Shown: in pieces, positions 780 to 63,097 of the stretch | Position numbering within the stretch: the first letter of the stretch is position 1 | Layout: each line of letters begins with the position of its first letter | NCBI GenBank assembly: GCA_964199315.1 | Contig: OZ116701.1 | Span: forward strand, 17,298,001-17,362,000 | Direction: 5' to 3' | DNA: 64,000 nt | Source of the DNA: Orbicella franksi | Taxonomy: Eukaryota | Notes under the pieces: model-generated | Database searches by the model: none | The model's input: only the letters and a program-made list of their open reading frames with translations | What the model was told of the DNA's origin: nothing | Program-made: the position numbers and the translations under genes

Positions 780-3700
780 ACATAAAGTCCAACGCTCACA
801 TTTCAAGACGCAGCTTAAAACCCAACCGCCAGTATCCTGATGGCATTCAAGAAATAAGTGACGGCATCAAGAAGTATGTAACCTCCATTGTTAAGGAATC
901 TGTGGCGTCTTACTGTCTCTCTCCTAACAAAGTGTGCGTGGCAGGTCCCCCCGGACCAAAGGGGATCGAAGGATCTCGAGGTGAACGAGGACCAAAAGGA
1001 AGTACTGGAATCAAGGGCGAAAGAGGTATTTAAGATTAAATCACGTGACCTGTCCCTCGATGCTCTGTTCTAAAGGAGAGCTCGTTAGTCCTTAAGTGAA
1101 ACAGAGGTTTATTTTTAACGTTGTTAGGAGCTTTTGTGTTTTTGTTTTTTGTCTCTGAAAGTCTTCAGTTGTGATCAAATTAACATGGTCAGGGATAAAG
1201 GATAAAAACATGTTGAATAACGTGTCAATCGTGTAGTCGTATCACAACTAAGAGACCCCTAGGTCACCATATGTCCGCCATCTTGGATACACCATGTCGG
1301 ATTTCAAAAGTTGATTTAAAACATCAGAAAAACAATTATAAAAATACAAGCCCCGCAAATAGTTTTGGATAAAGTCGTAATTCAATTCAAAATCCTGGAT
1401 AGATTCTATCAAAAGCGACGAGAAATTAGCCAAATTGCTGTGTTCTTTGCTTCTTGACTTTTTATGGCGTGCGGTCTAACTTATTTCTGACTGTGTCATT
1501 TGAAGAAGAAAATTAGTACACAAAGAACTTGCACAGAACAAATCAAATGATCGCTGTGTCAGTGCCATGTATGTCATCATAAGTCGTGCTGTAAGTTAAC
1601 AACTTATACTTCAAGGAAATGACAACGAGAAAGAAAAAGGTTAAGGGACAAATGAAACTTCGCGATTCAAATTACTGTTACACTTTTTCTATACATTAGA
1701 GCCTAAGTTTAGCTTTAAACGTCTGCCACTGTTTACGATGAATCATTAATTTTATTTCCTTCATTAAATATTTCAGGAGCTCCTGGACATCCTGGACCTA
1801 AAGGTGATGTAGGGGAGTCGATATCTGCTCCAGAAGTGATTGTATGTCCTGCCTCACTCACTGTAACTCAGTACCAGACCGCCACGTTTTCCTGCTCAGC
1901 TGATGGTAATCCAAAGCCTAACGTATCCTGGAATAAAATAAGTGGAACAGAACTGGTGAATAAGGACGGTCAAGGCAATAAGCTCCAGATCAAGAGTGCT
2001 GGTTACAATGACTCGGGGAGTTACGTTTGCACAGCTACAAATGTTTTTGGACGAGCTAAGAAGGTCGTGAAGCTTTTCGTACAAGGTAATCAATTTTATG
2101 ATCGTCACGTACGCTTCAAGCGATACTCTAAGGAGAGCGCTGTTAAGTGTTGCATTATCGTCAATTAGGAAAAATTTACGTTTATTTTAATGTTGCAAAT
2201 TCAACAATGGAGTCCCATCTCCATGCATTTTTAAGTGCGGCCAAATCAATTTGCAAGTGCATCCAAGTAAGGGAGAGGATAAACAATAGCTGCTGTAACC
2301 TTCGCAATTCTTAGAGACTAGCTCTTATATACCCATTGCTTTATTGTACAATTTATACATGCTACATGTTTTAATTTTATATACATTTTTATTATTATTT
2401 CTTATTCGTAAATAATTTTAATTTGTGTGTTTGTGTGTCCCCAATAAGTTGTGAAAACTAAATACATTGACACATTAATAAAGCTTTTACTTACTTTACC
2501 TACTTGATATGTGCGTTTAGACACCTCCCAAATAATAACGATGCTTTTGCTTGCTTGCGTATTTATCAATTTTTTTTATTTTTTTTTTTATTTAGTTACT
2601 TATTTATTTGTTTGCCATGTATTCAAGTTAAGATATTTCCAAAACATTTTGAAACAGTTCTTGATGTCCTTTTGTCAGTCTATTTACTCTGAGTTAACCT
2701 ACGACTTCCCCTTCCGCTGTAATCATACACCGCGCAATATTTCCAGCCCTTTAGTCTGTTAGAATTTAGTTGCTAGCGTTTTTTATTTACTCACACCCTT
2801 TTAATGATAGTTTGAAGTTGTCCAAATTGTTATCTTTGTTGCCGCAGTTTTCTCCTCTTAAAATCTGTCACGCTCACAGTGTGGTTGTGTTACAATAAAA
2901 CTAGATGTAAACTATGTGAGAGTTTAAATTTGTCGTCTGTAATAAATGTATAGCCCGTTCTAGGCTCTCGATCAGTGGGGACGAAAAATAGCAGGCGGGT
3001 GACGAGCAGATCCCGTTCGCTTTTTCGATCGTCCCTAATGACCGAGGACCTACAACTGGCTATACATTTGCAGACGACAAATTTGAACACTCACATAGCT
3101 TACCTGTAGTTTTATTGATCTCAACTCCACTATGCCGTGTGATACGGAGAAGCTTTATACTAAAAGAATGAAGCGTCAATTCAGGATATAAAGATACTAT
3201 CATATCAAGGCCGTAGCTAGTAGCAGGCAAGCCGAGACACTTGCCTCAGTCTCTTTCTTTTTCGTTTTTTGTTGTTTATAATCATCATAAACACCTTTAA
3301 TACCAAGGGAAAGACTTTAAACGTGGGCATTGCCTCGGTCACGATTTCTTCGTGGACATTGTCTCAGTCATAATTTTTTGTAAAAGCCGACAAAGACGAC
3401 AAATACAGGACACGTTATGGGCGTGCAATCAGACGTCCCAAGAGACTGTAGACCATTGACTAACAACTAGACTGTTCACAGTCCTGTATTCTCGTATTTT
3501 TATTCGATCGTTCAAAGCGCAGATACAATCGCGAGAGAACTGGACGCCAGCGCAAAACGGGAGACTTGACAGGGTAGGGGGAGTCAATAGCCCTTTTCAC
3601 GGTTAACTTTGCTCATTTGCATTACAATAAAATCTAGCATGTGTGAGGCAATTTCGGGCTATTTCGTGGTTTTAGCCGGAAATTGCCTCCCATCCACGTT

Positions 3701-6700
3701 GGATTAAATTGTAATGCAAATAAGAAAAATTAACCGTGAAAAGGGCTATTATTCCGCAAGTTGGATGTGAGATAGTAGATAGCCAACGAGGTGCATAGCG
3801 CCGAGTTGGCTATAATCACCTGATATCCAACATGCGCGAGTGGAATAATTGTTTTCATAAAAACGCTCCCAAAATATATAAAATGAAACCAAAAGAATCA
3901 CGCGTGGCTCATAACCCATGATGGCTAAGCCAGTGAAAACTCTTGAATTGCATTAACCAAAGATCCAGTTTTTAAGAAAATGTGATAACCCGGTTAGAAC
4001 TGGCTTTGTCAAACTAGAGTATGTCTCTTCTCTGAGCTTAGTAACCTTAGTAGTTTTCTATCCAAAAGCACGTTTAAAAAAATCTTTGTCTCACGCTTTT
4101 AAATTCAGGAAAGGAAATACCCCTTACTAGCCGTGTTCGAAGTCCGCGCGTTAAGAAACGGACCAAGTTTTTTCCTTCTCGATTTATGACTCAAGCGTAA
4201 AACAGGCTTAACTTACAGTATGGACCGAGAAGACGGCGCTAGTAAGATATTTTTTTTTTTATACTCTACGCGTATTTCTCTGGTTCGAAGCGGTAGAATA
4301 AGGCCCGCTAAATTTACCGATCCTAGGGCGCGTAGTAACTAAGAAGTATAAGAAATGTTAACATGTCCTAATAGTTTCAATCGTTTATTTGTATGTTTAT
4401 TTGTTTTTTCGTCCAGTTCCCCCACAATTCCTCGAGACTCCCGACAGCGTTGTAAAAGTAACAGGAAATTCGGTAGCTTCTCTTTCCTGTCGAGTATTTG
4501 GTTATCCACAACCGACAGTTGTCTGGTCAAGAGGACTTGTGCCGTTACCACAAGGTCGAACTACTGTTATCAATGGCACACTGAATATCTCCAACTTTAA
4601 ACCTCAAGATACTGGTCCTTATCAGTGCAAAGCCACCAATAAGTTGGGATCTGTTAGTGCATTGACAACCTTGAATTATGTCAAACCAGGTGAGTACCGA
4701 AGAAGATAGATCTAGACCGTATTTGTCCCATAATATCTCCCACTTTAGTCCTGAAGACGTTGGTCCTTAATCGTGAAGCTACTAACAAGCTTGGATCTGT
4801 TAGGGCATGATAACCTGCGCAACGTGTGTGTGACAGCACCTAGGAACTAATATTCTTGGGTTTCACGTGACGTCGCAAGCCTTGATCAAATCAGTGTCCG
4901 CCATGTTGGTGTCCTTCGGGTGTCAAATTTATGCCAGTAATAGTCCATTTCTACAGTGAAGCTTCTCTATTATCGCTCTATTATTTCGACAACTACATGG
5001 ATTTCCAGAAAAAAAAAACGATAAAAGTACCGGGCATTAATCTAAAGGTATCCCAGTGCTCTCTGAGAATCCCAAAAGCTTAGAGAGACGAGTAAAGGAA
5101 AGATATTAAGATCTCGGTCATCGGGGTTGACACCCCGCAAGCAAAGCAGCCGAACAGTTCAGTCCAGACCAGAAAATTCAGGATCTACAACAGCCGCAAG
5201 CCTCGAACCATGCAACAGCTTCTAGTTCTGGGCCTGCATCAGCCGGCGCCTCAGCGCATGCAGCCCACATCAGCGCCTTCGAAAGAGGAAATGGATCAGC
5301 TTTATGCCAAACTCAACCAATGCAAAATTAAAGCAGTAGCTTTAAGTTTAATTGATCCTTTTGCTGACCACTTTATCGACCAAAGCCGCTCTGTTCCGGT
5401 AGTTTCAGAGCGAAGTGTTTGCTACAAACTCGTTCACTCTCTAGCACTCTCTTGTTTGTAGCGTCGCCGCGACTCACCGCAGAAATCCACTCGTTTGTCC
5501 TCCTAATAGTGAGTTCCTCCTGTTCTTGCCCTTGATTTGAAATAATCTTAGGTATACGAAAAACCCTGAGCCTCTACGATTCCAACTTTTGTTCGAACAG
5601 CCAACAACGACGCTTAAAACCATCCCCTCTTTCTCGCATGAACTCTTCTTTGGATACGCTTTGTTTACGCTTGAGGGACACCAAGATGGCGGATGGTAAC
5701 CGTTGCTAAGCTATTGGTCACGTGGGGGAAACCCAAGAATTGTTTATTTTAACTATGTATTGTTTCACTGACTGAAACATCTAAAACAGTAACCTACGTA
5801 GACTCCCCAGCTACGCTGAAAGTCGACAGGCAGTTTAGCCTTCCCCGTATTTGTTAGCTACACTGATCCACTTAAGTAGCCTTTGTTATCACTACTATTA
5901 GAGGATCGCTAAAACAGGCATCTTATGGACAGATCGAGATTTAAAAACTCGCGCTGTTACTAGAAATAATTTTTTGTTCTTTGGTTTCTGATGATACCCT
6001 AGAATTGCGCTGTGAACCCTTGTGGTGTAATTGTCGCGCGCACATTGGGAGAATAACCCCATTTTCTCAGAATTAAGCTCAATAGAGAGATACATAATCG
6101 TTTCCGCGTGGTCGTGAACCATGTATCATTTTCTTGATTGTAGCGTGAACCAATTTTAACGCATGTTATGTCAATAATTATCTGAAATGTAAAATTACCC
6201 GGCAGTATTCGTAAAATTCAATTTAATTGTGTCCTCGAGAACAAAGCATGCGAACAAAAATAAGACTTAGTGCCGCTTAAAGTTGTAAACTTTAATTATA
6301 AAACATACATTAATTAATTTACCCCTTCCTCGTCGTTTACGGTTCACAACTATTACTTTACCCTTGGCTTTTGTCCGTTTCTAGCTGATGTTGCAAGTTT
6401 TTATTAGGATCTTTAGATTCAAAGGAATCATCTTAAAGCGTATTGATCACGTGTTAATCAACTTATTATCAAACTCGAGTTAATCTATTTTTATCTATGG
6501 CAGTCTGATTGTCTTTTTTCTGCAAAATATGCAATAAGAGGCTGATGAATACTCCCTCAGTGGCTATTACGCGGTCTTATTGACCTGTTGCAGTGATTTT
6601 GTTAAGACCCTGGTACTCATTCAGACGTTTTATCTACGGAAACTGTTCAGTCTCTTGTTGACTATATAAAGTTTTGCTAAACCTGCCTTTGTTTTTCTTT

Positions 6701-7874
6701 TTGAAGTTCCAGATTTCTGGAGAAATTCGGCGATTATAACAGGAAACTCATTTTATAAAAGTCGCCTTCATGAATTCCTAACACCTGCTGTTGGAAGCTA
6801 CCCTAGTTGGGTCCTGTGTTACCGCGCTTCCACTCACGGCTGGGCTGTCCGTACCTTTCACAGCAGGTGTGATGGGAAACGAAACACGGTTACCATCATC
6901 AAAAAGGGACAGTACGTGTTTGGAGGCTACACTGACATACCTTGGGGTAAATAGAAATTTTCATATGTGTTTTCTTTAATTATAGGCTATTAAGGGACGG
7001 ACCATTAGAAAAGTGATTGGGATGGGAAAAAAAAACAATCATGCAAGGGAAGGTGACTGAAACAGAAACAGTGAATTGCACTGTCGGGTTTACAAAATGT
7101 AACCCCCTGAAGGGCACCTTGGTAAACAATTTAATACCGTTTTCCTGGTCCTGGTGAAATCCCCAATGACCTGGTTTTCTCTACAATTAGGAAAACGGAC
7201 ATTTTTCCCTTTCAAGGCTGATACATTTTGTGCGTAGCAACTTCATCATGGACACTGTAAGCCAAACACCCTTGCAGAAAAATCCTTATAGCTAACCATG
7301 GCTTAAAAGTGATAAAAAAGCATGTTCTTTAAACAGCCGCCCTTTTTAATTCGTTTGCATTCAAGTAAACGCAGCACATACTGTGTTTTGAAAGTCTCGA
7401 CATATAGGAGTGATTTCGCAACTGAAATGTATAAATGACGATTGTGGACACAGATGTGCACACCCATTACGAACCGAAACACTTCTCCCAAGATGGTCGC
7501 CAAGATCAACGTTGGACAAATGTTGTAAACAAAGACAATCATAGAGGTGTTAACACAACTAATGCGTTTAGTATGGACAGTTTGAATCTATTTTACTCAC
7601 TGATACCTAAAATTTACTACCGCTTTAGTTAATTCTTAACTTATTTCATAGAAAGCCACACACTCGTAAATGTAAAAGATCCACGGACTGCAATCAAGGT
7701 TCTAATGAGTGGTGTTACAGTAATTTTGGAGCCAGCCTACAGGCCGTTAAAGCCTGATATCTTGGCACTCGCCTAATTAACTTCTTCCCAACTTCTTCTT
7801 ATAAAACATATTCGCTAAAAAAATAAAGAGTGCAGTAATTGGATCTCGTGTCGTACAAACGCGCGAGACCGATG

Positions 7875-7913
<39 letters not shown>

Positions 7914-8854
7914 AGAGGTCTAATTACTCATTAATCGTATCGATAACAAAATTTCCAAATAAAAAAGTCTTTTGAGAATTTCTTTTGACCGAAAAAGGGG
8001 GAAGCGCCTTCCATAACTGTAGGAAATATTAAAAAGAAAGAAATTAAAGCGCGCGTTATTGACGTTTGAATGGTGAAGGCATCCAATTACAGGTAGGTAG
8101 CTACAACTGGTTGTAACTGGATACCTGTAATTGGACACCCACGTGATCGCGCGCCGATTACGTTACAAAAAGGCGCGCGGAGAACCAATCACGATCGAGA
8201 TGATCCTATATCACAGACAAAAATTTAACGTTGTTTATGATTATGGCAAGATTATTAGCCCGTTTATGTTCTAAATCACTATGGATATAAAAGTGAATAA
8301 AGTAGTATTCCGGTTTTTCTGGATGATGTTCGGAATTTATTTCGTCTATCATGAATTACGGAAAAGGTTAATCATTTGAATCTGCAATTGTAAAACGACA
8401 ATAACTTCCAGAACTGCTTAAGATGAAAGATTATTACTGTATACAGGATCGACGGAGCATACGAAAGTGTTTTTTGTCCTGATTTGGTCGTCAAGCTTCT
8501 TTGCTTAAACTGTAATTCTTATTCAACTTTAATTGTTCCTCTTTAGAGTCCAGCGCTGGAAACGCTGCCACTTCCAATGCGTTCATATTTTCACTCCGCA
8601 ACAAAGAAGGTCTTGGACCATTCAAGAGCTTGTCGACGAACCCATCACAAGCAATTTACAGGAGCCCAAGTTACGGTCCGGTATTTGGTTGGTTTGACTT
8701 CTACATTTCTGACAATGCAAATAGTAACACTCGTTCATACACATATTTTGGCAACTCTTACTCAGTTCCAAGTGGAGTACAAGACAGGAAAACAATCCTG
8801 GCTGGGACTCACAACTTCACACCTGACGAGGTAGAGGTCTTCTACCTTGGCTGA
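780..8854 (+). CDS. Collagen-Ig-Ig-TLDc protein, copy A (5'-partial; TM exon 1 lies upstream of the window)
   Basis: Exons 780-1025, 1777-2085, 4417-4689, 6713-6946, 8547-8854. All have AG/GT boundaries and phase-1 junctions that join into one open frame. Motifs: GPPGPKGIEGSRGERGPKGSTGIKGER+GAPGHPGPKGDVGES (collagen); two Ig domains (C..W..DSGSYVC and C..W..DTGPYQC); TLDc (WVLCYRASTHGW..FHSRCDGK..TVTIIK..VFGGYT..W / AFIFSL / GPVFG / EVEVF). Confidence 0.9.
2952..3061. mobile_element. MITE (AGCC..GGCT ends, AT flanks)
   Basis: Imperfect ~34-bp TIRs. A partial relative lies at ~19845-19915. Confidence 0.6.
3589..3747. mobile_element. Hairpin MITE (AGCCCTTTTCACGGTTAA..TTAACCGTGAAAAGGGCT)
   Basis: About 40 bp of near-perfect inverted arms, with AT on both flanks. 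Confidence 0.7.
4854..5738. mobile_element. Internally deleted DNA transposon, ISL2EU/PHIS-like, with THAP remnant
   Basis: 11-bp TIRs TCTTGGGTTTC/GAAACCCAAGA with AT on both sides; empty site in copy B. Minus strand 5623-5408 reads MVLSVVVGCSNK..RIPKII..EWISAVSR..ERVCSKHF (THAP C2CH signature, one frameshift). A convergent plus-strand coding remnant lies at ~5210-5400. Confidence 0.7.
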
Positions 8855-11379
8855 ACAATAATAATATGTAATCAGTAAAATTAAGCACCCTACAAAACGT
8901 ACGCAAGATTTCAACGCAACATATTGCAGCATTCTTGCGCATGGAAACTTTTGCTATCCCAATGCATTGCACCATCTAACATCTTGGAACATACTGCAAC
9001 CGGATGACCAAACGTGGGCAATAAGTTTTCGAAAAGGATCAGTTGTATGTCTAACATGTTACGTTGAAATATTGCGTGTGTTATAATTTTACCTTCCCGT
9101 TTTTCATTTGATTGTTTTCGACACCCTGAATTCTATATGTTTTGCTCCATATAGAATATCGTCCTGTTTTGAATGCGAATGGACTGTTCTTAAGACCAAA
9201 CTGGGTGCATTTTTTTATGGTTATGTTTTAGATTTGTTTTCATACGGCGCAACGTGAACTGATGAATCACGAATTGGCGTCATGGCATAAGCTGCATAAG
9301 TGATACCTTCCCTTGTTGTAGAGTTGAAATTATCGTTATTATCGTTACGTTACTTTCACTTCACTATTGACTGGGAAAATAAATCTACAGTTGAACCTTG
9401 GTCTCGCTATTTTCGAGGTACGAGGGGCCTCGCTACTTTACGGGGGACAGGGGTCGCTACTTTTGGAATCTATCAGCGGCCACAAATTTTTAACGTTACT
9501 TTTGGGGGGTTACCACGGACATTACGGATAAAGCTTGTGATAACAGATTTATAAGATATACTTTCCACGTTCATAGGTATCATAATTCAAGTATCATGAA
9601 AGCAATTTTCTCTGATAATTGTCTTTTCCTTTAAAGGAAATATTTCAAACTTCGGAAATACTAAAACATCTTTCTTAGCTCAGATGAAGCAAATTAGTTC
9701 GGACCTTTGTTAACCAGCCTTAGTTAGGCGTTATCAAAAAAACGGGAAGCTGAAAAAACAGTTATTAGTGTTTATTCATATTAAATTAACCTTATTTCTA
9801 CAACTATTAGCTACTACTGTCATTCAGCAAGAAATATCTTTGACATAAGTACTGAACGAAATTTGAAGACGCAACAATCACCGCGGGGTCATTTTGGATT
9901 TGTGTTTGAGGTAAACTCGGTAAGAAAAATCACATTTTTATCGTGATAAAGCTTCGTTCTCAAAATGTTCTCCGTCCACACTATAACTCAAAGCCGGCGT
10001 TTTCAAATTCCTCCGGTGTGAAGTTAACAAATTGACCCCAGATTTTCATGCGTCTGTCCTGTTATTGATCATGAATCTCGTCATAACATTGTCAAAGTAG
10101 CTGTGGATCGAAATTCATTGTCAATAACAGGACAGACGAATGAAAAACCGCCGTCAACTTGTTTTTTTGCGAAACTACATGGCATAAATTATAAATTCAT
10201 GTGTCTGTCCGCTTATTGACAATGAAAATTAGCCAAGTAGCGCGAGAATTTCTGCAGTTATTGTAAAAAGCATTTTCGGGACGGATTAGTGTTGACGGTA
10301 GGCCTAACCGTAGAAATAGAGCTGCGTTTTCAAATTTCTCCGGCGTAGTACCGAGGGGCCTTAGTCCGATAGAATGACAGAAATTCATTGAAGGTAGTAA
10401 AGATAATTTGTTGATTTTAAACTTGTTTTGGCCATATGACATCTCGTGCAAAGTGAATTTTCTGCTTGAACCAGGATCTCCGAAAAAGCGATCATTTTCA
10501 ATAGTAATAGGCTTAATGTTGCACGGAAGAAAAAAGTCGTCGTAAGAAAATATATTGGTCTTGTTATATTTTGTTAGAGCCCGAAATCTTTAAAACGTGA
10601 AAAATATACGTGATAATATTGGTTTCGCGACGATCCCGTAACATTAACTGTCACATTAGCCGCAGGGACAGCTGTAGTCAGTCCAGTTAAAACTAGTTGT
10701 GATTGTTTTGGTCTCTATATAGCGTTCAATTGAGTGTCGTAAAACCAAAACCAAAGTAATCACTCTGGCCAATCACAAAGGATACAGACAGTACCGTGAA
10801 CCAATCAAAACTCCTAGTAATTACATGCCGCTCATGCGAAACGCAGGAAAACAAGTGCGAACGAATCACGATTGGTTTTGGTTTTACTTCTGATTGGATG
10901 AAGTGGCGGGAGTTTTTTAAGCCAGTTAATCATGTAGCGTATTTGATGCAAAACCAATGACTTTTCGACATCAAATGAAAACCGTCTATCTATTTGAAGA
11001 TGTAAATAGAAAGCCTGCGACCGACTTTGCATTTGTGTATTTCCCTGTGTTCAACCTCCTCCCGCTTCCTCGGTTGGGACTGAAGATTTTCCTTGAGTCT
11101 TTTACCATGAGTGCAATGTTTTCATGGCCATGGTGTGCACTCTTAAAGACCACACAAGTGACGCCTTAAATTATTCAAAAACTCAAGGGAACAATAAAAA
11201 AATGTGGTGCATTTGTTTTTCCCAATAACTTTCAAATTTTAACGGCAAAGAGCCAATTAATTCCTTCAATGAGATCTGCCTGCAGGGAATCATGGTAGCT
11301 GTATTCATCATCTTGGACTGGATATTTGTTCTGATGAATACAATAACCATGATTCCTTGCAGGAACTTGTCATAGAGGG

Positions 11380-11547
11380 AATAGGCCAATTTGGATATAG
11401 TAAAATTCTAACTTTGTTCTGAGGCCTAGCGGAATAAAACAAAATAAATTAATTATTCATCCCTCAACCTCAATGCGATTACTTTTGTTTTATTCCCGTA
11501 AGCCTGAAATACAAGCAAAAATTTTAATATATCGAAATTGGCCTATT
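11380..11547. mobile_element. MITE (AATAGGCCAATT..AATTGGCCTATT); copies at 27637-27804 and a disrupted one at ~44560-44930
   Basis: About 28-bp TIRs. Present in all three spacers, so it predates the triplication. Confidence 0.65.
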
Positions 11548-12440
11548 GACTATTAGAGGGGAAATCAGCGAAACTCTGCGCTCGCATGACAGATCACCAC
11601 CTCCTTCTTGAACCCAACGAGCTCATGGCAGATATTCAGTGAGAAGTCACCTGTCTAGCTCCACTCCAGTTTTCATTTTTTTAGTTATGCATTACTGTCT
11701 ATTGAAATTTGCCTTGAATGTCTTAACTACATTTCAGAACTTCACGACACAGTAATAGTGCTGTCAGCCTAGTTAATCACCAATAAAAATATTTTTCCGA
11801 GCCAGTTTGACCCACTGTTGATAAGGACGGTATAGCATCTACAGAATCTACATCTACATCTACGTTTTGCAACCTGCAAAGGGATTTTAAAAAACAAATC
11901 ATGTCACATAGGCAGAAGCCGATGGAGAGGAAGCCTTCTATGCAGAAACTCATTGTGCTTGTCACTCATCGCACCTAAAGGGCATCTGCAAAGGAGGCTA
12001 ATGAAGAGGTGCTCCAAAGGAAGCAGGGGCCAGATGAAGGTGGGTCCTTTTTCTCTCCACTAGCGGAAGAAAGTGTGAAAACAATTTTGGCCCATCATGA
12101 GGCAAGGGATCCCATATCTTTTCCAGAGTAGATTTGCAATGGATTTTTATTCTGGATGGTACGTACACAAGCAGCAGCTTTGCTGCCATCAATTACCATG
12201 GAACCTCTATGAAGAAGTTATGTTTATCAGTGTTACATAGTTTATCGTTGCAGCTAGGTAATGGTTCACAGGAATCCCGAGTCCAGAAGAATCTTCCTAC
12301 AGAACCCAGCACTATTAATACTAGAGCAGTTAAATTGGTTTACAATTTTAGCTGTTGAATTTCATTGCTCAAGTAGAACTTTACAGTACATTGTATCATC
12401 GAGCTTGAACATAAAATTGAAACTCTGTGGCGCGCTGATG

Positions 12441-12471
<31 letters not shown>

Positions 12472-12509
12472 CTTTTTTTAAAGTGTGGTTATTTATTCGG
12501 TTTATGACT

Positions 12510-12786
12510 GATTAAAATGATGAGTTCCGTCCAAGAGTATAGAGCCTTTGCATAAATCGCGCCTAAATTTAATTATACACTCTAAGCCTCACGATTCATG
12601 TGTAAAATCCTTGGTCTAGAAACATGAGTACGAGGCTCAGGATGTGTAAAGTATTGTTATTCAAACTTATGCGCCATTTATGCAAAGGATCCTAATTTCC
12701 GCTTTGGTGTTAACAGTGAATGAAGAATTCTCCGGTGGATATGTTAAGTACCAAAGACGACTGGAGCAAATTAAAATCCAAACTGA
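12510..12786 (+). pseudogene. Decayed DUF4419 fragment upstream of receptor copy B
   Basis: AAAATGATGAGTTCCGTCCAAGAGTAT (12514-12540) matches the MMTSVQEY codons. 12695-12786 reads FRFGVNSE*RI..VDMLSTKDDWSKLKSKL with a frameshift, versus FRFGVTYACGIPAVEMLGTEDDWSKLKSKL in the intact gene. The last ~35 nt match almost perfectly. Confidence 0.85.
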
Positions 12787-13285
12787 ACAACCTGTGATTA
12801 CACTACTATCGACGTGGGAAATCTAAAACGTCAAATAAAGAAAACATGGCTTAAGAAATAGACTTCAGTTGCATCCATGACACGGACCAGTGGTTACTCA
12901 GGGGTTTCTCTATTTACAGCAAAAGTTTCTTCTCGAAAAATAAACTCAAAGAGGAAATATGAAGAAAAACGTATCTTTTGCCGCCTTGTTTCTTTACATT
13001 CTTGACCTGATTACACATAATGCCTCCTAGAGCCTGAAGGGATCTGTTGACTGAAACGCTTGATTTTAGTTACCAACACCTGATAACTTCACTCAGAAGT
13101 CCTGATAACTCAATCCTTTCCTGATTGGCATTTTTTCCGTAATGTAATACTACAGATATTCGTTATTTACTTGCCAGTCTGTACCTGCTGTCAAGATCAC
13201 GTATAGTTTACGCGACAGTTTACGCGATTGTTAAGAGAAATTCGATTGTTTCATATCCCACTTCACAATTCAACATCAAAGAGCT

Positions 13286-16200
13286 ATGGATGGCTGCGCT
13301 AAAGAGGCGAAAATAATGTTAATAGAGAAACGTAGCGAGAATCTTCACAAGGCTTCCTCGATTTTATCTGTTAGCGCAATTCTGTTGACGATGGTACTGT
13401 TCATCAGAATGCAGACAGTGGTCGATGACACGAAAATGATGGATTTAAAATTCACTCTGGAAATTCGACAAATCAAAGATGCTTTGAAAGAAAAGAAAGC
13501 TTCTCATCAAGCTCGTGTGAAAGGGAACTTTGATGTTGTCAGTGGTAAGTGATGAAAGAAGAAATATTGAAACATAGGTTTAAAGAAAGTAAATCCCGTC
13601 TTGTTATCGGACCCCTTCTGATGAACAAGGTATCTATTGTCTCAAAGCTTTGCACGTTTTTCACGGTGACAACGAGTTTGATGCAATGCTTATCAGTTAA
13701 CGGTGTCGATGAAAACGAAAGCTGAAGGTTTCTGTCTTCCCTCTATGTAATCCTTTCAGCAGAGAATACAGTTAGCAATTCAAGTAAGCAAAGTTTCGTA
13801 TCGGAACAAGAGTATCATTTTATTTAGTTTGCAGAGCGTTGTAGTCGTGTTACAATTTGGTATCAGCTCGGCCTGGATGGGTTGATAATTCAATTTGTCC
13901 ATTTTGGCGCATTTTGCCGGCATTAAAAGGTTGCCAACCGTTGATGTTTCAAATCACGGAAGTTAGGATTTGAATCTAGTGACTGACGTTTTCACTTTTA
14001 TTGAAATGGAGACATTCAAACGACCAGTGACCCCCATATTTTGTTTTATGAACTGAAACATACAAAACTGCATTGATTTTGCGAAAAACAAGAACAACTG
14101 GAAAATCAACAAACGTTTCATAGTTATATACAGTAAATAGATTTGATCTTCAATCTGAAGACTAATTTAATGCAGATATGCCCTCAAAGACTGTTGTTGA
14201 CCGCAGCTACAAGATTGACAAGATTGTAATCTAAATTAGTCCGCTGGCAGTCCACATCATCAATGCGTTCATGTTCACGAACAATCACTCGTCTGACCCA
14301 AGGAGAAAAGACCGGCTACCAGCAGTCTTAAACCAAATAGACGTCAATAAACCCGGCGTGAACAACAAGAAAAAATTTATTAAAACAATTAAAACGTTAT
14401 CTGGTTGAAAAGTTAGATTAAAATAAGGTCAATAAGCTTTCGGCTGCCAACACGAATGATCAGAAAGACGCGAATGGATGGATATATAGAGTAAAAAGTC
14501 TGAAAAAGTACAGATTAAAAATGTATAATTAAAGTTGTGACAGCTGGATAATGAAAAGAGACTAATTTTATCGTTATTAGTCTAGAATTATTGCCCGCCT
14601 CATGAGTCATGGCGGTGTGCCATGACTTCAGAGTTTGTCGCACACGATAATCGCCTTTGTCACTTACTTTAGAGTTGTCGAAGTCGATTTGATGGTCTTT
14701 TCAACCATGCATGGTTCGAAATGATAGAGCCTGAGTTGCAATTCTATGATGACATGTTCTTTTTCTTCGCGTTTGGAGGCATCTGCTCGTTTCTTTCAGT
14801 ACAGTCACCGCAGGGAATCTTATAAACAACGTTTGTTTGGGGGTGGCTGGGTGGCCTGAATTTCGGCGAAGGGAATTCTTGCCATAAAGTTTTGTAAGGT
14901 CTGGCAACAACTCGAATTCCACTAATACGAAGTAATCTTTGAAGTAGTTCAGTGACACCATTGACGTAGGGCAGACAAGAGAAATCAAAACGGGTCACAG
15001 ATGGCTCAGCCCGCTTGAAAAACATGCACACTAATTCTTCTGAGGAGAGGAAATTATTTCCACAGCAGGTTTATTCTTTAAGATGTTGGTAATGATCGAC
15101 AGGGGGTAACCATTTTCTTCCAAAGCACGAGTAACATGTTTAAGTTCATTATATTTTGCTTCAGTTGTACTTGAGAGGTTGGGCGCCCGATAAGCTGTGC
15201 CGGTTTTGTGCTTCTTGTCATGGTGGGTGTACGTCTAGTAAGCGCTACAGACGTCACAGCTTGAATGCACGAGTTTAATCATGCTGGGCGTAGGCACGAG
15301 AGAAACAAAAGTGATCTTAGGTGTGTGTGATTCAGCTGAAAAAAATAAACCAGACAAAATATTTAAGTACAAAATATAGCGACTAAAGAAAACCGGCTGA
15401 CAACGGAGCAAATAAACTTACAAAACTGTGGCGACTCGAATTCTATAATTTGTACTTCAGGGTTCACAACAGTGAAGTAGCTAAGGAAAACGTGGTAGAA
15501 ACCAGCAGATCGAACTTTCAGTGCTAACAAGCACTAGAGAAAATGAAACACAAAACTACGCATAAAGAAGAACGCTTAAGTACTACAGAGTGGGTTGCAT
15601 AATTCCCAGGGGTCACGGAGAAACGTGACACCCAAAAGCAAAGAAAGTTCTAGTCGCTACATTGGGAACCAATCATTATTTGCTGGTTTTCTATAAACTT
15701 GAATAGAAATTATTCCACTGATCCGGGTGACCAAGGTGTCCAAAAATTAGTTTTATCCATTACTTTCGGTTTCAATCGAGAAAGAGATCTTAGGGTCAAT
15801 GAATTCAAAGTGTCAGAGGGCGTCTTTCTTGTTGATGAGAAAGTGTCGTGGATTTTTTTTTAACAATCCTTGTAAACACAGTAGTTGTTGGAAAGAACAA
15901 ATTACAAAAGGGAGATTATGTCATCAGTATTGAGATTAGTTCTGGAGAATAATGTACTGTCATTATTGAGTTTGTCGCGAATATAGGAGCAAGCTTTCTT
16001 GACAGGAATCGCTGTAAAGGGGAGGACCAACTAATTAATTAACAACCAATTTAACAACATTGTTTTTAGTATTCTCGCAATGAGTACATGCTAATGCCAA
16101 AGATGCAATAGAAGTACTATAATATATCTAACTTACAAATTAAACTGTAATAACATTCTGTCTGTGATCCATGCAGCAGTGGATAGATAGGTAGCTGTAA

Positions 16201-18220
16201 GGCTGCTGATAATTGGAGACCCTTTCATATACCGATCCATTTTGTAGCCGTCAGTTAACGGTGAAAATTGGAAATCCTGTTTTATGCTGATTAATTGTTT
16301 AGTTGAGTTTCAATCTGTTACTGTCCTTCAGAGCAGAGAAAAACGTCTCCGTGGCAACTGTTTATGCAAATGCTCCTATAATACGCATGACGGATATTGT
16401 TTCTCTTCTAATTTGAATTATGTGGGAGTTATAATGCCCTCTCACCAGGTTTCTGGGGAAAATCTCTTGGTGAAAACTGCAGTTTATAAGTAAGGAGAAT
16501 CAATTTTAAGCATTTAATTTTGTATTCTGTGGGGCCAGGGTCTTAATTTTCAACTCTTCACAACCACTCATTCTAAGACAATAAGCATCCAATGTGTTTC
16601 GCTTCTACAAACGTAACAAAGTAATTTGCCAACCGGTTTCGTTGATGTATAACTTTTTGCAAAGAGTGCAAGCTATGCAGTAGATGACATTGGCTGAGGT
16701 ACAGGTGAAATGATCAGTGATCTTGACGGATCGGTTGGGTTCCGATATTTTCTCAGCGTTGCAAATGAAAGGACATGTTTTGCAAACTTTAAATTACTTC
16801 AAAATGATCCCGATACTGGTAGAATCTTTCCGCAACCTCCATTAATTTCATTCAAACGCGACAAAAACATAGGTACTTTTTAGTCAGAAGTGCATTCCAA
16901 ACAAGTGATCAACCCGGAACTTTTATATGCGCACGCGCACGATGCAAAACATATCCTTTCCTCATTTCACCTGTACCTCAGCCAATGTCATCTACTGCAT
17001 AACTTGCACTCTTTGCAAAAAGTTATACATCGGCGAAACTGGAAAACGACTAGGCGACCGATTCCGAGAACACCTTCGTGACGTTGAGAAAGACGACAAA
17101 AACACATCTAAACCGGTCGCGAGACACCTTAATCTCCCCATCAAGGAAGTACATTGTACGGAAAGCCGCAAAACTCTAGAACAAAAATTTATTTTACAAA
17201 TCGGCACTCTTAATCCTCACGGTATCAACGAACGCTTTTCATTCAACTAATTTATTCTGTTGTTTTTCACGTTACCATGCACCAACCAATAGCGTAGCTC
17301 CATCTTTTTGTATATAAACTACACACAACCCACAATTCCTCGATTCGCTCCGACGAAGGGCTAACGCTCGAAACGTCAGCTTTCAAATCTCTTTACGGTG
17401 GCCAATTCACATTATCAACCCAGTTGATAAAACCAAATTATCTTGTTACACTCCCCACCGACGCAGCGCCAGTTTCTTTAGAAACTTACCCCCTCTATTA
17501 ATTGGCCAACCCTCTCTCCCCCCTCTCACCGTTTCATGTGCAAATCAGTTACCTATAGGTAATCGGACATAAATGCCAACATTTCATTTTTCCATAGACA
17601 TAAAGTCCAACCGTCACATTTCACGACGCAGCTTAAAACCAGACCGCCAGTATCCTGATGGCATTCAAGAAATGAGTGACGGGATCAAAAAGTATGTAAC
17701 CTCCATTGTTAAGAAATCTGTGGAGTCTTACTGTCTCTCTCCTAACAAAGTGTGCGTGGCAGGTCCCCCCGGACCAAAGGGGATCGAAGGATCTCGCGGT
17801 GAACGAGGACCAAAAGGAAGTACTGGAATCAAGGGCGAAAAAGGTATTTAAGATTAAGTCACGTGACCTTTCGCTTAATGCTATATTCTAACGGAGAGCT
17901 CGTCAGTCCTTCAGTCAAAACAAAAATTAGAAAATAAGAAAAATAAGTTTTCAATTGCTGGTTTTCAGTGTCACGCAATTCAAAATAGACCAAAATAAAA
18001 ATCAAAACCGGTCGATAGATAAAGTCCAGAATCTGGGAAATGAAAGAAGGTAAATATGCAAAGACTCTCGCCAAAATTCTGGTCACAGCAATTTTTCTTA
18101 TGCGAGATATGCGGAGAAATTTTTTACGCAAATTTATAGAGATTTGTATGGATACGCCATGCTGGTGCCCATCCGTATGGGCACCAACATGGCGGCCGGA
18201 AACCAACAGAAACACCTGTT

Positions 18221-18253
<33 letters not shown>

Positions 18254-18383
18254 CTCGAGGAGCTCTAAAACATTAAAATAATACTTTTTCTAAGACATGA
18301 ACTGTTCAGATAGCCAAGTTCCCCAAAATAAGTCACTTTTTTTAACCATCATGACAGCTCTCAGGGCCGTCATGTAAATGCCG

Positions 18384-18416
<33 letters not shown>

Positions 18417-21400
18417 GTATCACAAAGCCAAGAACCCATTCGGAGCGAAAATTTGTATGAATAATAGTTTTCAGCTGCTCTTATACATCGTTTAAGTAAA
18501 ATTTCAGGAAGATCAATAGTTTGGTAGTTCGAATTTTTGTGACGTCATGTGAAAACCAGCTATACAGGTTTATTTTAAACGCTTTTTAGAGTTTTTGTCT
18601 TTTTTATTTTTTACGCTCATGATACTGGAGGGGCGTCTTTATGCCTTGCTTCTCCCCCAGCCTTCTCCGCTTAGCGTCCTAAGTATTTCTAAAAGCTTAA
18701 GTAATCACTCGTGATCAAATTGATGTGGTATATGAAATATAAAAACTTGTTGAATAACGTGTCATTCATGTAGTCATATCACACCTAAGAAACCCCTAAT
18801 TTCAAAATGTCCACCATCTTTGATACCCCATGTTGAATATCAACTGAAGCATTTTTCAGCTCCGAAGTTGATTTAAAACATCAGAAAAAAAAAACATAAA
18901 AACGCAAACATTGCAAAAATTTTTGAATAAAGTCTTTATTCAATCCAGAATCCTGGATGGGTTCTCTCGGCCGGTGACGAAACATTTGCCAAACTACTGT
19001 GCTCTTTGTATCTTGGCTTTTTCTGACATAACGAACTAACAAATGATTATAAATGACAATACACTGTGTCATTTGAAGAAGACAGTTAGCGCACAAAGAA
19101 CTACCATAGAACAAATCAAATGATCGTTATCTTAGCGCCATGTATGTTATTCGAAATTTGTACTGTAAGTGAAAAACTTATATTCCGAGGAAATGACAAC
19201 GAGAAAGGAAAAGATTAAGGAACAAATGAAACTTAGCGATTCAAATTCCTGTCACACTCCTTTTATATATACATAAGTTTCAAACTAACAACGAGAAAGG
19301 AAAAGGTTAAGGAACAAATGAAACTTAGCGATTCAAATACCTGTCACACTCCTTTTACATATACACTAGTTTCAAACGTCTGCCGTTGTTTACATTGAAT
19401 CATTATTTTTCTGTTGCAGGAGCTCCTGGAGATCCGGGACCTAAGGGTGATGCAGGGGAGTCGATATCTGTTCCAGAAGTGATTGTATCTCCTGCCTCAC
19501 TCACTGTAACTCAGTACCAGACCGCCACATTTTACTGCTCAGCTGATGGTAATCCGAAGCCTAGCGTATCCTGGAGTAAAACAAGTGTCACAGGACAGGT
19601 GAATAAGGAAGTCCAAGGCAATAAGCTCCAGATCAAGAGTGCTGGTTACAATGACTCGGGGAGTTACGTTTGCACGGCTACAAATATCTTGGGACAAGCT
19701 AAGAAGGTTGTGAAACTTTTTGTACAAGGTAATCAATTTTATAATTGTGATATGCCTTAAAGTAGAGCGTTGCTAAGGGGAGCACTTTCGTCTGTTAGGA
19801 AAAGGTTTGCGTGAGTCCGTCACGCTCATTCTGTGGTGCATTTACTGGTCTGTTCCAGGCTCTCGGTCAGTGACGAAGAAAAACGCGGGCGGGCAACGAG
19901 CAGATCCCGGCACACTGGGGATTTAAGCCCCTTTAAACGCTAAGTACGTCTAAGTACACAAACTTTGCTTCCTTTTTTCTCCAAACTTTTCTCCTACCCT
20001 TGAATTCCTGTCTTGATCATTTCAGTTTTAAAAAATCCGACAAAATTTCAAATTATGACGTCATATTTGATGACGTCACATACACATGGTCTATGACGTT
20101 TATAGTTTCATACCATAAAATCATTCGATCGAGTTCATGACTAGTGGAACAATGTACTGAAAACCGTTTCTCAGTATGACAAATATTTTTTGATCTATAA
20201 CAATTTAAATATATTTCACTGGCTCCCCACGGAACTATATTGTTTCTTCAAAATCAATCGTATTGGTTTATTTTCTCCAGTCTTCATTGAAAAATGCTAC
20301 AAATTCGGTAAAATAAAGAACTTAGTGTCCCTAAAAATCGCAGGTATCGCTTTGGATTTTTTGTTTTCAGTTCTCAACTACTTTTGTCTCTGTCTTTCGA
20401 AAACATTAAAAAATGTTAGAATTTACGAGTTTAAAATTAGCAGAATGGTATGGTGTGACGTCATCGTTTATGACGTCATAATCTGACATGCGCTGTCCAC
20501 TGTTTACTTTCCAAGTCTGGTGACGGTATGTTAAGTTTGACACAGCGTGGTATATTTAAAACAATATTTCGGCTGGCCAGACCAGCCTTCTTCAGGTTTA
20601 GATGTTACTTATTTAAAAAATAAAATTACAATATTATATAGTGGTGGATGTCTTAACACATATTTCGAGACTAAAAGGAGTGGCAGAAATCAAAAACAAA
20701 ACAAAAAAGTCTTATAGTCAATTGTGAATTTAGGCGGGAAGACACCAATGCGAAATCTCCATGCTGTAATATCGTTTCTATTTCCGCCACTGCTTTTAGT
20801 TTCGAAGTAGTTTCGCGTAGTAACTAAGAACTATAACAAATATTAATCTGGTCTAATAGTTTCAATCGTTACTGATTTGTTTGTTTGTTTTTTCGTCCAG
20901 TTCCTCCACAATTCCTTGAGATTCCTGCTAGTGTTTTAAAAGTAACTGCAAATTCCACAGCTTCTCTTTCCTGTCGAGTATTTGGTTATCCACCACCGAC
21001 AATTGTATGGTCAAGAGGACTTGCACCGCTACCACAAGGTCGAACCACTGTTATCAATGGTACACTGAATATCTCCAACTTTAGTCCTCAAGATACTGGT
21101 CCTTATCGGTGTAAAGCCACGAATAAGTTGGGATCTGTTGGTGCATTGACAACCCTAAATTATGTCAAACCAGGTGAGTACCAATGAAGATAGATCTAAA
21201 TCGTATTTGTCCCAGAATATCTCCCAATTTAGTCCTCAAGAAGCTGGGCGTTAACCGTGAAGCTACGAACTGTTAGGGTGCGATAACCTGCGCAACATGT
21301 GTGTGGCAGTACCTGGGGACTAATTTTGTTTATTTTAATTATTTATTGCTTCACTGATTGAAACATCTAAAACAGTAGCCTACGCAGACTCCCCAGCTAA

Positions 21401-24400
21401 GCTGAAAGTCGACAGGTAGTTTAGCCCTGTATTTTTGAGTTACACTGCTCAACTTAAGTAGCCTTTGTTATCACTACTATTAGAGGATCGCTAAAAAGGC
21501 ATCTTATGGCCAGACCGAGATTTACAAACTCCCGCTGTTATTAGAAATCAGTTTTTTTGTTTTTCATTTCAGATGATACCCTAATGTTCCGCTGTGCATC
21601 CTTGTGGTGTAATTGGCGCACACATTAGGAAAATAACCCCATTTTCTTACAATTGAGCTCGATAGAGAGATGCATAATCCTTTCCACGTGGTCGTGAGCC
21701 ATGTATCATTTTCTTGATTGTAGCGTAAACCAATTTTAACGCATGTAATGTCAATCAGAATTATCTGAAATGTGAACTTACCCAGTACTGGTAAAGTTAT
21801 AATTGTGCTTTCGAGAACAAACCATGCGAACAAAAAAAAAGAAGTACTTAGTTACGCCTAAAATTGTACGCCTTAATTATGAAACATACATCAGTTAATT
21901 TACCCATCCGTATTAGTTTATGATTTTCAACTATTACTTAACCCTTGGCTTTTGTCTTTTCTAGCTGATGTTGCAAGTTTTTAGTAGGGTCTTTAAATTT
22001 TAACTTGAATTGAGATGTCATTTTTAGATTCAAAGGAATCACCTTAAGCATATTGATCACGTATTAATCAGCTAATTTTCAAACTCGAGTTAATTTGTTT
22101 TTATCTTGGCAGTCTGGTGTTTCTTTCTGCAAAATGGCCATTTATAGTGTAAGAGGTTGATGAACATTCTCACAGTAGCTAGGTGATGATCTTATTGAGC
22201 CGTTGAAGTGATTTTGTTGAGACCATGGTACTCAACTGAAGACATTCAGACGTTTTACTTACGAAAACTTTTAAGTCTCTTGTTGACTGTATAACATTTT
22301 GCTAAACTTGTCTTTGTTTTCCTTTTTGAAATTACAGATTTCTGGAAGAATTCGTTGATAATAACAGGAAATGCCCTTTATGAAAGTCGCCTTCATGAAT
22401 TCCTAACACCAGCTGTTGGAAGCAACCCTAGTTGGGTGCTGTGTTACCGCTCTTCCACTCACGGCTGGGCTTCAAGTACATTCCACAGCAGGTGTGATGG
22501 GAAACGAAACACGGTTACCATTATCAAAAAGGGACAATGCGTGTTTGGAGGATACACTGATATAACTTGGGGTAAATAGAAATTTCCACGTGTGTTTTCT
22601 TTAATTATAGTTTATTTAGGGACGGACCATTAGAAAAGTAAAGGGGGTGGGGAAAATACAGAAAAAAAAAAACATTTATGCAAGGGAGGGTGACTGAAAC
22701 AAAAATTCGTCCAAAGAAGAAGAGAAGCAAAAAAAATTCCTGCAGAGTGAATTGCACTGTCGGGCTTACAAAATGTACCCGCCTGAAGGGCACCGTGGTA
22801 GACACTTTATATTGCAGTTTTCTTGGTCCTGGTGAAATCCCCAATGACCTGGGTTTCTCTACAATTAGGAAAACGGACATTTTTCCCTTTCAAGGCTGAT
22901 ACACTTTGTGCGGAGCAACTTCATCATAGACACTGTAAGCCAAACACCCTTGCAGAAAAATCCTTATAGGTAACCATGGCTTAAAAGTGATTTAAAAAAG
23001 CATGTTCTTTAAACAGCCGCCCTTTTTAATTCGTTTGCTTTCAAGCAAACGCAGCACATACCGTGTTTTGAAAGTCCGACATATAGGAGTGATTTCACAA
23101 CTGACATGTATAAATGACGATTGCGGACACAGATGTGCACACCCATTGCGAACCGTAACACTTCTCCTGAGATGGCCGCCAAGATCAACGATCGACAAAT
23201 GTTGTAATCAAAGACAATCATAGAGGTGTTAACACAACTGATGCGTTTAGTATGGGCAGCTTCAGTCTATTTTAATCCAGGTTCTAATGAGTGGTGTTAA
23301 AGTAATTTTGGAGCCAGCCTGCAGGCCGTTAAAGCCTGACATCTCGGCACTCACCTGACTTCTTCCTAACTTCTTCTTATGATAAAACATGTTCGCATAA
23401 ATAAAGAAATAAAGAGTGCAGTAACTGGACCTCATGTTGTACAACCGCCGCGAGGCCGATTTGAAATTTGGAGGACGATTACTCCCTGAATAGTACGACA
23501 CAAGGTCTAATTACTCATCCATCGTTTAATTTGGGTCAAATTCGTCAAAAACTTGGAAGCCAACTTACCATCATCAACCCGTGCTCTGTTCTCTGATAAA
23601 GCACGCTGTTTCAGCCAATCAGAGCGCGCATTATATGGAAACTTTGTTATAAATCACTATATAAAAGTGAAAAAAATAGTATTCCGGTTTTTCTGGATGA
23701 TGTTCGGAAGGTATTTCCTCTATCATGAATTACGGAAAAGGTTAATCATTTGAATCTTAAAGTTATTGTCGTTTCACAATTTCAGATTCAAATTTCAAAA
23801 TTAAAAAAGTCTTTTGAGAACTGGGTAAGATGAAAGATTGTTATATAGCTGGCGTTTTTCCCGCTACAGCGCGCCCATTCACTGGCTAGTTCATGGTCAC
23901 ATGACATCTAACAATGAAACTGTTACACGCCAAATGCCATGAACGGGCAACATTGCGAAAACTATGACGTTAAACGGGAAAAAGTTCACTGTTACCCACG
24001 AAATGTTGACCGTTGTTGCACGTCATTTGTCAATAAAGTGAATATTTTTTTCCACCGGTTTGACCCATTTTTTTGCTATATCACAAAGCACTTAATGACT
24101 GATCCCTTGGGAAACAGTGAATTTTGTTTCCCGAAAATCTGAATGTTTCCCGAGACGAAGTCGAGGGAAACAATGAAATTTTCGGGAAACAAAATTCACT
24201 GTTCCCCTCGGGACCAGTCATTAAGTGTTAATTATTATTGTATATAGGATCGACGGAGCATACGAAATTATTTTTTGTCCTGATTTGGTCGTCAAATTTC
24301 TATGCTTAATTGTAATGTAATTCCCATTTAATTTAATTTAATTTCCTATTTCATTCTCCTCAAAGACGAATAGCTCATAAGTTGAATCTTAGTATCTCCA

Positions 24401-25329
24401 ATATGTCTGTGAAATCTGATAATCAAGTTAAATATTTAGGACTCATTTTTGATTCCAATTTGAACTGGAAACCATACTTACACGAATTGAGCAAGAAGGT
24501 TTCAAGAGGTATTGGAGTACTATCTAAAATTAGATATTATGTAAATAGAAACATATTACATCAATTATATTATTCAATTATCTACCCCGTCCTCACCTGC
24601 GGTTTATCAATTTGGGGGCAATACTTATAGTGCTACTCTTAAAGCCTTAATAACTCTTCAAAAAAGAGCTATACGTACTATAACTTTTTCAAAACCAGAT
24701 GAACACGCTGAACCTCTTTTTAAGGAATTAAAGATCCTTAAATTAACTGATCTTGTTATCCTTCACAATGCACTCCTCATATATCACTATTACTAAAATC
24801 TTCTTCCATCTTCCTTTGAAAATTTCTTTCAAACAGTAGCATCTGTACACTCATACAATACTAGGCTTGCTTCTAAATCAACCTATTACATCAATACCAT
24901 CAAAACAAACTATGGTAAATTCAACATTCGCTTTGCAGCTGTAAAAGTTTGGAATCACCTTGACGAAAGCATTAAACAACTCCCCCTTAAAACGTTTAAA
25001 AACAAAGTCAAGCTAAACATCTTACAGTCTTACTGTTCATGAGTTTTCAGCTGGTATTTGTTTATTTATTTTATTAATTTATTTATTTATTTTTTATTTA
25101 TCTATTTATTTATTTATTTATTTATTTATTTCTTCTTTTCGTCTCTTTTTTATTGACAAATTAATTGCTTTCATCAAGCTTTAGTGCCAACCTACCTCCT
25201 GTACTTCAACATTACTTAGTTTTACTCAGCTCGATTAGCTTTTTACTTATTCTGAGTAAACATTACCTCTTTTTTGTATTAATATATTATATTGTAAAGT
25301 TTAACTTTTTTTTATTTGGTAATAAAAGC

Positions 25330-53567: not shown

Positions 53568-53859
53568 TGTAAACAGGAAGTTTTAAGGCCTGTTCAAGGT
53601 CAGTGGAGTTCGAAACTGTTTATCATTCGAAAACAGTCAAGATTGGTGTCAATTTGAGTGAGCTGATATGATATTTACGCATCGTCAGTGCCGGGGTGAA
53701 TATGATTTTTTTCAATTTTCAGAGCTAGTAAGGTTTTAGAATAGCGTGCGACAAACGTAAAGCGATTGACGCAGACATTTATCTTGTCTAATAATTCAAT
53801 GTCTTACATTTTAAACAATGTCTTGATATTGGGGCGACATAAAACTGTAAACAGGAAGT
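53568..53859 (+). promoter_or_regulatory. Duplicated putative DUF4419 promoter/5'UTR module with composite Forkhead+ETS motif TGTAAACAGGAAGT
   Basis: The motif occurs at 50597 (once in unit 1) and twice per unit in units 2-4 (53568/53846, 56816/57094, 60064/60342). Each is followed ~17 nt later by a donor-like CAAG|GTCAGT. Confidence 0.4.
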
Positions 53860-54078
53860 TTTAAGGCCTGTTCAAGGTCAGTGGAGCTCGAAACGGTTTA
53901 TCATTGGGAAAACGGCCAAGATTGGTTGATAATTTTAGTACTTAAAGTTCATTGGTTATCATTCAAGAAAGCGAGGACACTAAATCATAACATTTGCACA
54001 CCTGCCAATACTAGTTAAAGTGTGCTTATTTGTCCGCCAAAGAATTGTATAGTTTTCGTAAATTTGACTGCATACAGA

Positions 54079-62937: not shown

Positions 62938-63097
62938 CAGTAGCGGATCCAGACCTTGAATTAAGACGGGGAGCGGGGGGGGGGGGCGGTTTTATTTTGC
63001 TTGCCCCGCCGGCTTTTCTTCCATCAGTAATTTCGTCTTTTTTTTACCCAAAGTAAGGGGGGCGGGCCCCCCGGACCCTCCCCTAGATCCGCCAATG
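62938..63097. mobile_element. Harbinger-type MITE; left-truncated copies in units 1-3 (~52397-52556, ~55645-55804, ~58893-59052)
   Basis: TIRs CAGTAGCGGATC/GATCCGCCAATG around a G-rich/C-rich interior. Confidence 0.6.

Follow-up and report, generated by a model that had tools for sequence, protein, structure and literature searches.

Three copies of a collagen-Ig-Ig-TLDc receptor gene and a tandem array of intronless DUF4419 genes lie on one strand of the 64-kb stretch of Orbicella franksi DNA analysed here as a whole (the window; G+C 39%, free of N runs). The flank at 12290-12870, ahead of receptor copy B, is found again behind the last DUF4419 gene, which raises the question of how the same sequence came to accompany both families. 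A sequence-only reading of this DNA had assigned the two arrays to one larger ancestral unit and had suggested, from their co-duplication, that they may be functionally coupled. Our analysis indicates that the flank is probably a passenger fossil, lying where two independent tandem duplications in this coral cluster meet.

Organization of the locus

The coordinates of the features are collected in Table 1. In receptor copy B, exon 1 encodes the membrane anchor and is followed by collagen, two Ig exons and a TLDc domain split across the last two exons. Pfam recognized I-set domains (E 2e-16 and 4e-16) and TLD (PF07534; E 3e-11 and 3e-7) in the exon ORFs of this copy, and collagen-type Gly-X-Y repeats are present in one receptor exon ORF of the ORF list. 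The studied TLDc proteins (PF07534) are OXR1, NCOA7 and TBC1D24. The receptor resembles this group in that its last two exons match the TLD model, and differs from it in that its TLDc stands after a membrane anchor, collagen and two Ig domains, so that the TLDc would be extracellular. Our literature search found no paper combining TLDc, coral and collagen.

Long ORFs in the introns of copy B (16909-17247 and 24337-25039) resemble transposon or retroelement remnants by appearance. The upstream region of copy C is interrupted by a 2.5-kb insertion (29516-32003) that is missing from the spacer between copies A and B and from E', a second Orbicella copy of the relic described below. This insertion contains direct repeats (29643-29829 / 30002-30185 and 29896-29998 / 31670-31772) and inverted repeats (30219-30383 / 31658-31501), and is probably a transposable element. 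On the minus strand at 45901-46137 lies a 79-residue ORF with a C-x9-C motif and a CHCH match (PF06747, E 0.009) of 16.5 bits, the cut-off being 27.2; it is probably what the sequence-only reading had called a COA4-like relic.

The DUF4419 genes scored 199.6 bits (54022-55284) and 203.4 bits (60518-61783) with PF14388, the gathering threshold of which is 25 bits. HMMER placed 4930 cluster representatives in this family at E <=0.001, and residues G239, D243, W244, W295, G320, W321 and G364 are invariant (numbering of the protein of 60575-61780). An AlphaFold2 model of this protein, built from 42 homologues, has fair confidence (pLDDT 76.7, pTM 0.76), and a Foldseek search with it gave no match in PDB or the Swiss-Prot AFDB (best E 0.02-0.05, TM <0.15). 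DUF4419 has no sequence relative in PDB and has weak matches only (<=0.41) in the protein atlas; the literature holds passing mentions of the family and no known function. Transcription of the DUF4419 ORF is very probable, since 91-96% of its sampled words are present in many polyA RNA-seq runs, including some very small ones. Raw polyA reads of run X23 gave no match to the relic, to exon 1 of copy B or to the last exon of copy A, a result without bearing on a promoter role or on co-expression. Contigs of the RNA library cover the entire examined stretch thinly and may be DNA carry-over.

Table 1. Features of the window, with positions counted from its first letter. A1-A3 are the alignments referred to in the text.
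Feature	Position	Strand	Basis
Receptor copy A (collagen-Ig-Ig-TLDc), exons 2-6	815-8851	+	tblastn using exon peptides of copy B; exon 1 falls outside the window, to its left
Post-gene DNA of copy A	8855-12270	+	matches B 25385-28449 and C 41459-45684 (self-BLAST)
Junction filler, ~19 nt	12271-12289	.	matches neither copy C post-gene DNA nor the relic unit (A1)
DUF4419 relic copy A	12290-12870	+	BLAST to 63244-63818; tblastn with intact protein; A2
Relic A, non-coding left part with T-run	T-run ~12441-12480	+	alignment and repeat search
Relic A, remnant of codons ~212-221	12511-12541	+	tblastn, A2
Relic A, 150-bp insertion with inverted ends	arms 12542-12575 and 12658-12691	+	repeat search
Relic A, remnant of codons ~222-254	ends 12794	+	tblastn, A2
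Relic A, TGA, then shared tail	12795-12797	+	codon comparison
Upstream region before copy B exon 1	12900-13285	+	matches 29277-29515 plus 32004-32147 and L001 13883-14260 (reversed)
Receptor copy B	13286 to ~25700-25703	+	exon ORFs, Pfam
Relic copy B, first 125 bases only	28521-28645	+	BLAST to 63244-63365 and 12290-12414; A1
Copy C upstream region	28948-29515	+	matches 63929-63999, L001 13348-13717 and, with 29277-29515, 12900-13144 (BLAST)
Receptor copy C, exons 1-6	32147-42124	+	tblastn
Post-gene DNA of copy C	42128-45684	+	A/B match stops at 45684 (BLAST, A1)
DUF4419 tandem array, intronless genes, 3248-base period	50020-62153	+	Pfam PF14388, self-BLAST, A3
First DUF4419 unit, frameshifted	50829-52033	+	two parts, residues 1-104 and 103-402, are read in separate frames
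Intact DUF4419 ORFs	54079-55284, 57327-58532, 60575-61783	+	PF14388, E 1e-58 to 7e-60
Terminal relic E, undisturbed form	62951-63818	+	BLAST to 52398-52975 and 12290-12870; A1-A3
Start of receptor-upstream-like sequence after relic E	63929-63999	+	85% to 28948-29014

The two receptor spacers share one junction

Self-BLAST recovered the resemblance that the sequence-only reading had drawn between 12299-12900 and 63253-63800 as a match of 12290-12870 to 63244-63818 (83.6% over 592 columns, E 5e-151). The further matches it had placed at 28520-28625 and ~28964-29000, to the flank and to the end of the window, were likewise recovered, as 28521-28643 against 63244-63365 (84.6%, E 1e-27) and as 63929-63999 against 28948-29014. 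Directly after relic copy B come 300 bases of repeat-derived DNA (28646-28947), of which 28762-28845 was found again at two unrelated places in L004, one of the comparison loci described below.

An abrupt switch in the A-B and B-C spacers, from post-gene sequence to this flank, had also been claimed, and alignment A1 places it at an identical breakpoint in both. The two spacers track the post-gene DNA of copy C to ...GGTTCACAG (A 12270, B ~28503), pass through the filler, which has identical letters in the B spacer at ~28504-28520, and from A 12290 and B 28521 (equal to E 63244) track the relic unit. After 45684, copy C continues into unrelated DNA; the two joined points lie 17,560 bases apart there, in agreement with the earlier figure of about 17.5 kb. 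E and the units of the DUF4419 array continue leftwards beyond the point equivalent to 63244. The undisturbed right-hand side of the junction is thus seen in C and the undisturbed left-hand side in E and the array units, and judged from these alignments copy C would hold the right-hand breakpoint, at 45684, in its undisturbed form. Since C and the E and array units each run past the joined points, the junction with its filler, identical in A and B, would be a single event inherited by both spacers. Contigs of runs X12 and X1 (DNA) and X15 (RNA library) bridge 12132-12424, that of X12 without a mismatch.

The flank derives from a dead DUF4419 gene fragment

The relic retains about 43 of the 402 DUF4419 codons, and the 150-bp insertion splits them. 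In a tblastn search with the intact protein, residues 212-225 (14 residues, E 0.15) and 235-254 (20 residues, E 1e-4) aligned and nothing else did; at the DNA level, 12695-12787 matches 54740-54833 at 81% (E 4e-13). The relic ORFs have no Pfam match, PF14388 included. The relic is similar to PF14388 in keeping the most conserved motif region of the family (G239, D243, W244 and L247 of the alignment) and differs in its small number of codons. By its sequence we class it as a fragment derived from DUF4419, not a member gene, and it would be unable to encode a domain. The same TGA that the sequence-only reading had noticed in both copies stands at the same codon in A and E (63738-63740), where the intact genes have CGG (Arg).

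The insertion, a 1-nt deletion after it and the TGA are all common to A, E and E', indicating that the fragment was dead before the Orbicella duplications. The insertion is also present in two relic copies from another coral (L002 11948-12293 and L007 14361-14648), so the death of the relic predates the split of that coral lineage from Orbicella. The 150-bp insertion may be a MITE, its 34-nt inverted ends being 82% complementary; no clear target-site duplication was seen, and its read depth at >=95% identity is ~2-3 times baseline.

The DUF4419 array ends in the same relic

The stretch 12290-12587 also matches each unit of the array (52704-52987, 55952-56235 and 59200-59483; 79.8%, E 8e-50), which the sequence-only reading had missed. 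In alignment A3 the units track the relic to the equivalent of A 12587 and E 63514, inside the insertion, and then jump to 50020, the switch falling at the same base in the units. Because the units end within the relic, the array is a second tandem amplicon with its right breakpoint in the same relic. The receptor amplicon, of 16.2 kb, extends from the 63244-equivalent through the receptor to the 45684-equivalent and lacks a live DUF4419 gene; the 3.25-kb DUF4419 amplicon, bounded by 50020 and the 63514-equivalent, lacks receptor sequence. They share 270 bases of relic, and it is this overlap that makes the flank match every array unit. Relic E extends both left of the receptor-amplicon breakpoint at 63244 and right of the array-amplicon breakpoint at 63514.

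At an offset of 3248, about 6.1 kb of 51875-61233 is identical but for 2 mismatches. Array units u2 and u3 have 3 differences in 3248 bases, a similarity that may stem from a duplication of very recent date, from a difference in copy number or from the assembly. The ~0.8 kb after the last DUF4419 gene (62154-62950) is missing from the inner array units, present in E' and partly present (to the ~62515-62529 equivalent) in L002, L003 and L010; the amplified unit therefore has a deletion of the native 3' flank.

Copy number and divergence

Reads and contigs of four runs were mapped on 8401-14400, the depth of Logan contigs being a rough guide only to copy number. DNA depth over 11601-14400, the flank included, was at baseline (X12 20-75; X1 ~190-1555), and over 12201-13000 it ranged from baseline to ~3 times baseline. 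The final 670 bases of the post-gene DNA of copy A are low-copy. Over the transposon pieces at 9801-10400, 10601-11000 and 11201-11600, X12 depth reached 2,000-37,000, and the two DNA runs gave 100-1000 fold baseline. The high-copy repeats of 9801-11600 have many alternative joints, and polyA RNA reads land there, most of them continuing into unlike sequence.

K2P distances were 0.16-0.21 between the Orbicella and L002 relics, 0.137 between relics A and E, 0.132 between A and E', and 0.05 between E and E'. For the post-gene DNA they were 0.13-0.18 between A or B and C and 0.024-0.037 between A and B; the three receptor upstream regions gave 0.11-0.12, and array units u2 and u3 ~0. The relic diverges at the rate of its non-coding surroundings and so has no sign of constraint. 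Self-BLAST along the receptor gene showed a mosaic of A/B/C identity, which points to later exchange between the copies and blurs the dating.

Gene order in other assemblies

An exact match to the DUF4419 protein of 60575-61780 is encoded on scaffold MZGG01001013.1 of GCA_002042975.1, a short-read Orbicella faveolata assembly (PMC10905781); this stretch is locus L001. It is 97.8-99.4% identical to the window, with ~1.5 fewer array units and with N gaps. The match from 63929 on extends to the equivalent of 29312 and then meets an assembly gap; the N gaps start 300 bases beyond the window end, and an inverted continuation follows. Within this continuation, a single contig (L001 13818-19359, reversed) holds a stretch like the DUF4419 left flank, a full DUF4419 ORF (85% amino-acid identity) and relic E', and then the upstream region and the first 21 codons of receptor exon 1. 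At 5-11% divergence, the E' copy is a paralogue and not an allele. It sits inverted between two N gaps, so that its true place and orientation are not fixed. Beyond the second gap, L001 has fragments of receptor introns in reverse orientation, 92% identical to A 1-540 and B 13706-14218; the inverted part, 13718-21209, may be a genuine palindrome or may result from faulty scaffolding.

Locus L002 (ENA ERZ25878340) does not exceed 87.7% identity to either of the Orbicella copies. Its features, all on the same strand, are receptor exons 5 and 6 followed by post-gene DNA, then the left flank of DUF4419 with a single DUF4419 gene, then a relic and upstream-like sequence; when the contig was extended rightwards, a second relic was found and no receptor within 9 kb. 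In L004 (ERZ25067879), the tail of receptor intron 5 lies 1.8 kb downstream of the DUF4419 gene and the last exon 2.9 kb downstream, followed by post-gene DNA. Synteny in related assemblies, which had been proposed as a check, thus gave a divided answer with flanks limited to 10 kb: receptor exons stand within 10 kb of DUF4419 at two of the eight loci of other assemblies (L002 and L004), and no receptor exon does so at the other six (L003, L005, L006, L008, L009 and L010), of which L003, L005, L006 and L010 come from further ENA coral assemblies and the other two from Desmophyllum pertusum. The closest homologue in Desmophyllum pertusum is flanked by an EF-hand gene and an SMP-C2 gene.

Discussion

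A tidy, ordinary segmental-duplication history fits what was observed: the junctions, the lesions common to the relic copies, the low-copy state of the flank, and a gene order that recurs in other coral DNA. The ancestral order on one strand would have been receptor, post-gene DNA, DUF4419 gene, dead relic, receptor upstream region and next receptor. The relic would have decayed first, until ~43 codons were left, with the 150-bp insertion and its inverted ends, one base lost and an end at the TGA. One non-homologous event would then have joined the 45684-equivalent, 3.5 kb behind the receptor, to the 63244-equivalent, within the left, non-coding portion of the relic unit, with ~19 nt of filler, through either a tandem duplication of the relic-to-post-gene stretch or a deletion inside a longer repeat; since both would leave an identical junction, the present DNA does not discriminate between them. 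The product would have been the 16.2-kb receptor unit, with the relic and without a DUF4419 gene. Further copying of this unit, and later exchange between the copies, would have given the A-B and B-C spacers their same junction. Later and separately, the 3.25-kb unit from 50020 to the 63514-equivalent in the relic insertion may have been amplified into the DUF4419 array. We infer this order of events from the divergences. The derivation of the shorter receptor units, through a single junction, from a longer arrangement with both receptor and DUF4419 has good support in the junction of A1 and in the gene order of L001, L002 and L004, so that the larger ancestral unit of the sequence-only reading largely stands.

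The locus is similar to tandem segmental duplications with a pseudogene fragment at the breakpoint, a general route of gene-cluster expansion in animals, in that a unique junction joins points that are distant in the undisturbed copy, later copies inherit this junction, the join has short filler and no long homology, and later exchange gives mosaic identity between copies. It differs in having nested amplicons of two families (16.2 and 3.25 kb) that both break in one 0.9-kb relic; in a region prone to duplication, we see no reason to regard this as more than coincidence.

Two other origins of the pattern have to be weighed against this history. The shared sequence might be a dispersed repeat, a transposon or MITE inserted independently beside both arrays, as its 150-bp piece with 34-nt inverted ends, its long T-run and the high-copy repeats of the adjoining post-gene DNA could suggest. 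However, depth over 12201-13000 stays within about three times baseline, against 100-1000 times for the true repeats nearby, and the exact same junction and filler in A and B would be unexpected for independent insertions. Moreover, DUF4419 coding remnants lie inside the shared sequence, and every copy of it in the window and in L001-L010 adjoins a DUF4419 gene or falls at the receptor junction. The sequence-only reading had itself named a genome-wide dispersed repeat as grounds against its view; with 11601-14400 at baseline we reject such an origin on read depth and consider it very improbable. It is equally improbable that the pattern is an assembly artefact in which repeats were wrongly joined. 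The near-identity of u2 and u3, together with the missing units, the gaps and the inversion just past the window end in the short-read assembly, could raise this suspicion, but A, B and E have diverged by 5-16%, too far for mis-joined alleles, and the independently made short-read assembly contains relic E and its surroundings, 97.8% identical. With the A junction bridged by contigs of three separate runs, this divergence between copies leads us to reject an artefact.

A history of two duplications also bears on whether receptor and DUF4419 form one functional cassette, a surface sensor and a cytosolic effector duplicated as a unit since both must stay together. Their same-strand adjacency in the window, in the E' copy (full DUF4419 ORF and receptor exon 1), in L002 and in L004 would agree with such a cassette, as would the probable transcription of DUF4419. 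Against it, all that the receptor amplicon retained of DUF4419 is a dead fragment of 43 codons, receptor sequence is absent from the DUF4419 amplicon, most DUF4419 loci elsewhere (six of eight) have no receptor exon within 10 kb, the closest homologue in Desmophyllum pertusum sits between EF-hand and SMP-C2 genes, and DUF4419 has no known function. We regard the cassette as unlikely. The two families grew through separate units, and what they have in common is a fragment that was dead before it was copied, which takes away the main argument for coupling; co-duplication does not serve as evidence for it, and functional coupling of the two is unsupported. More speculatively, DUF4419 and the membrane collagen-Ig-TLDc gene could be an old alternating pair in stony corals, the relic predating the L002 split, whose adjacency is kept by joint action (for example an outward TLDc sensor and a cytosolic DUF4419 partner) or by shared regulatory DNA in the relic or upstream region; we find this quite improbable.

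Passenger fossil and duplication seams together provide a datable history for a coral gene cluster with two unstudied families. Caution is needed with the short-read O. faveolata assembly, which is unreliable at this locus. The amplicon boundaries are now fixed for work on expansions of the TLDc receptor or of DUF4419, and the physical link between the two families is old, being common to at least one other coral.
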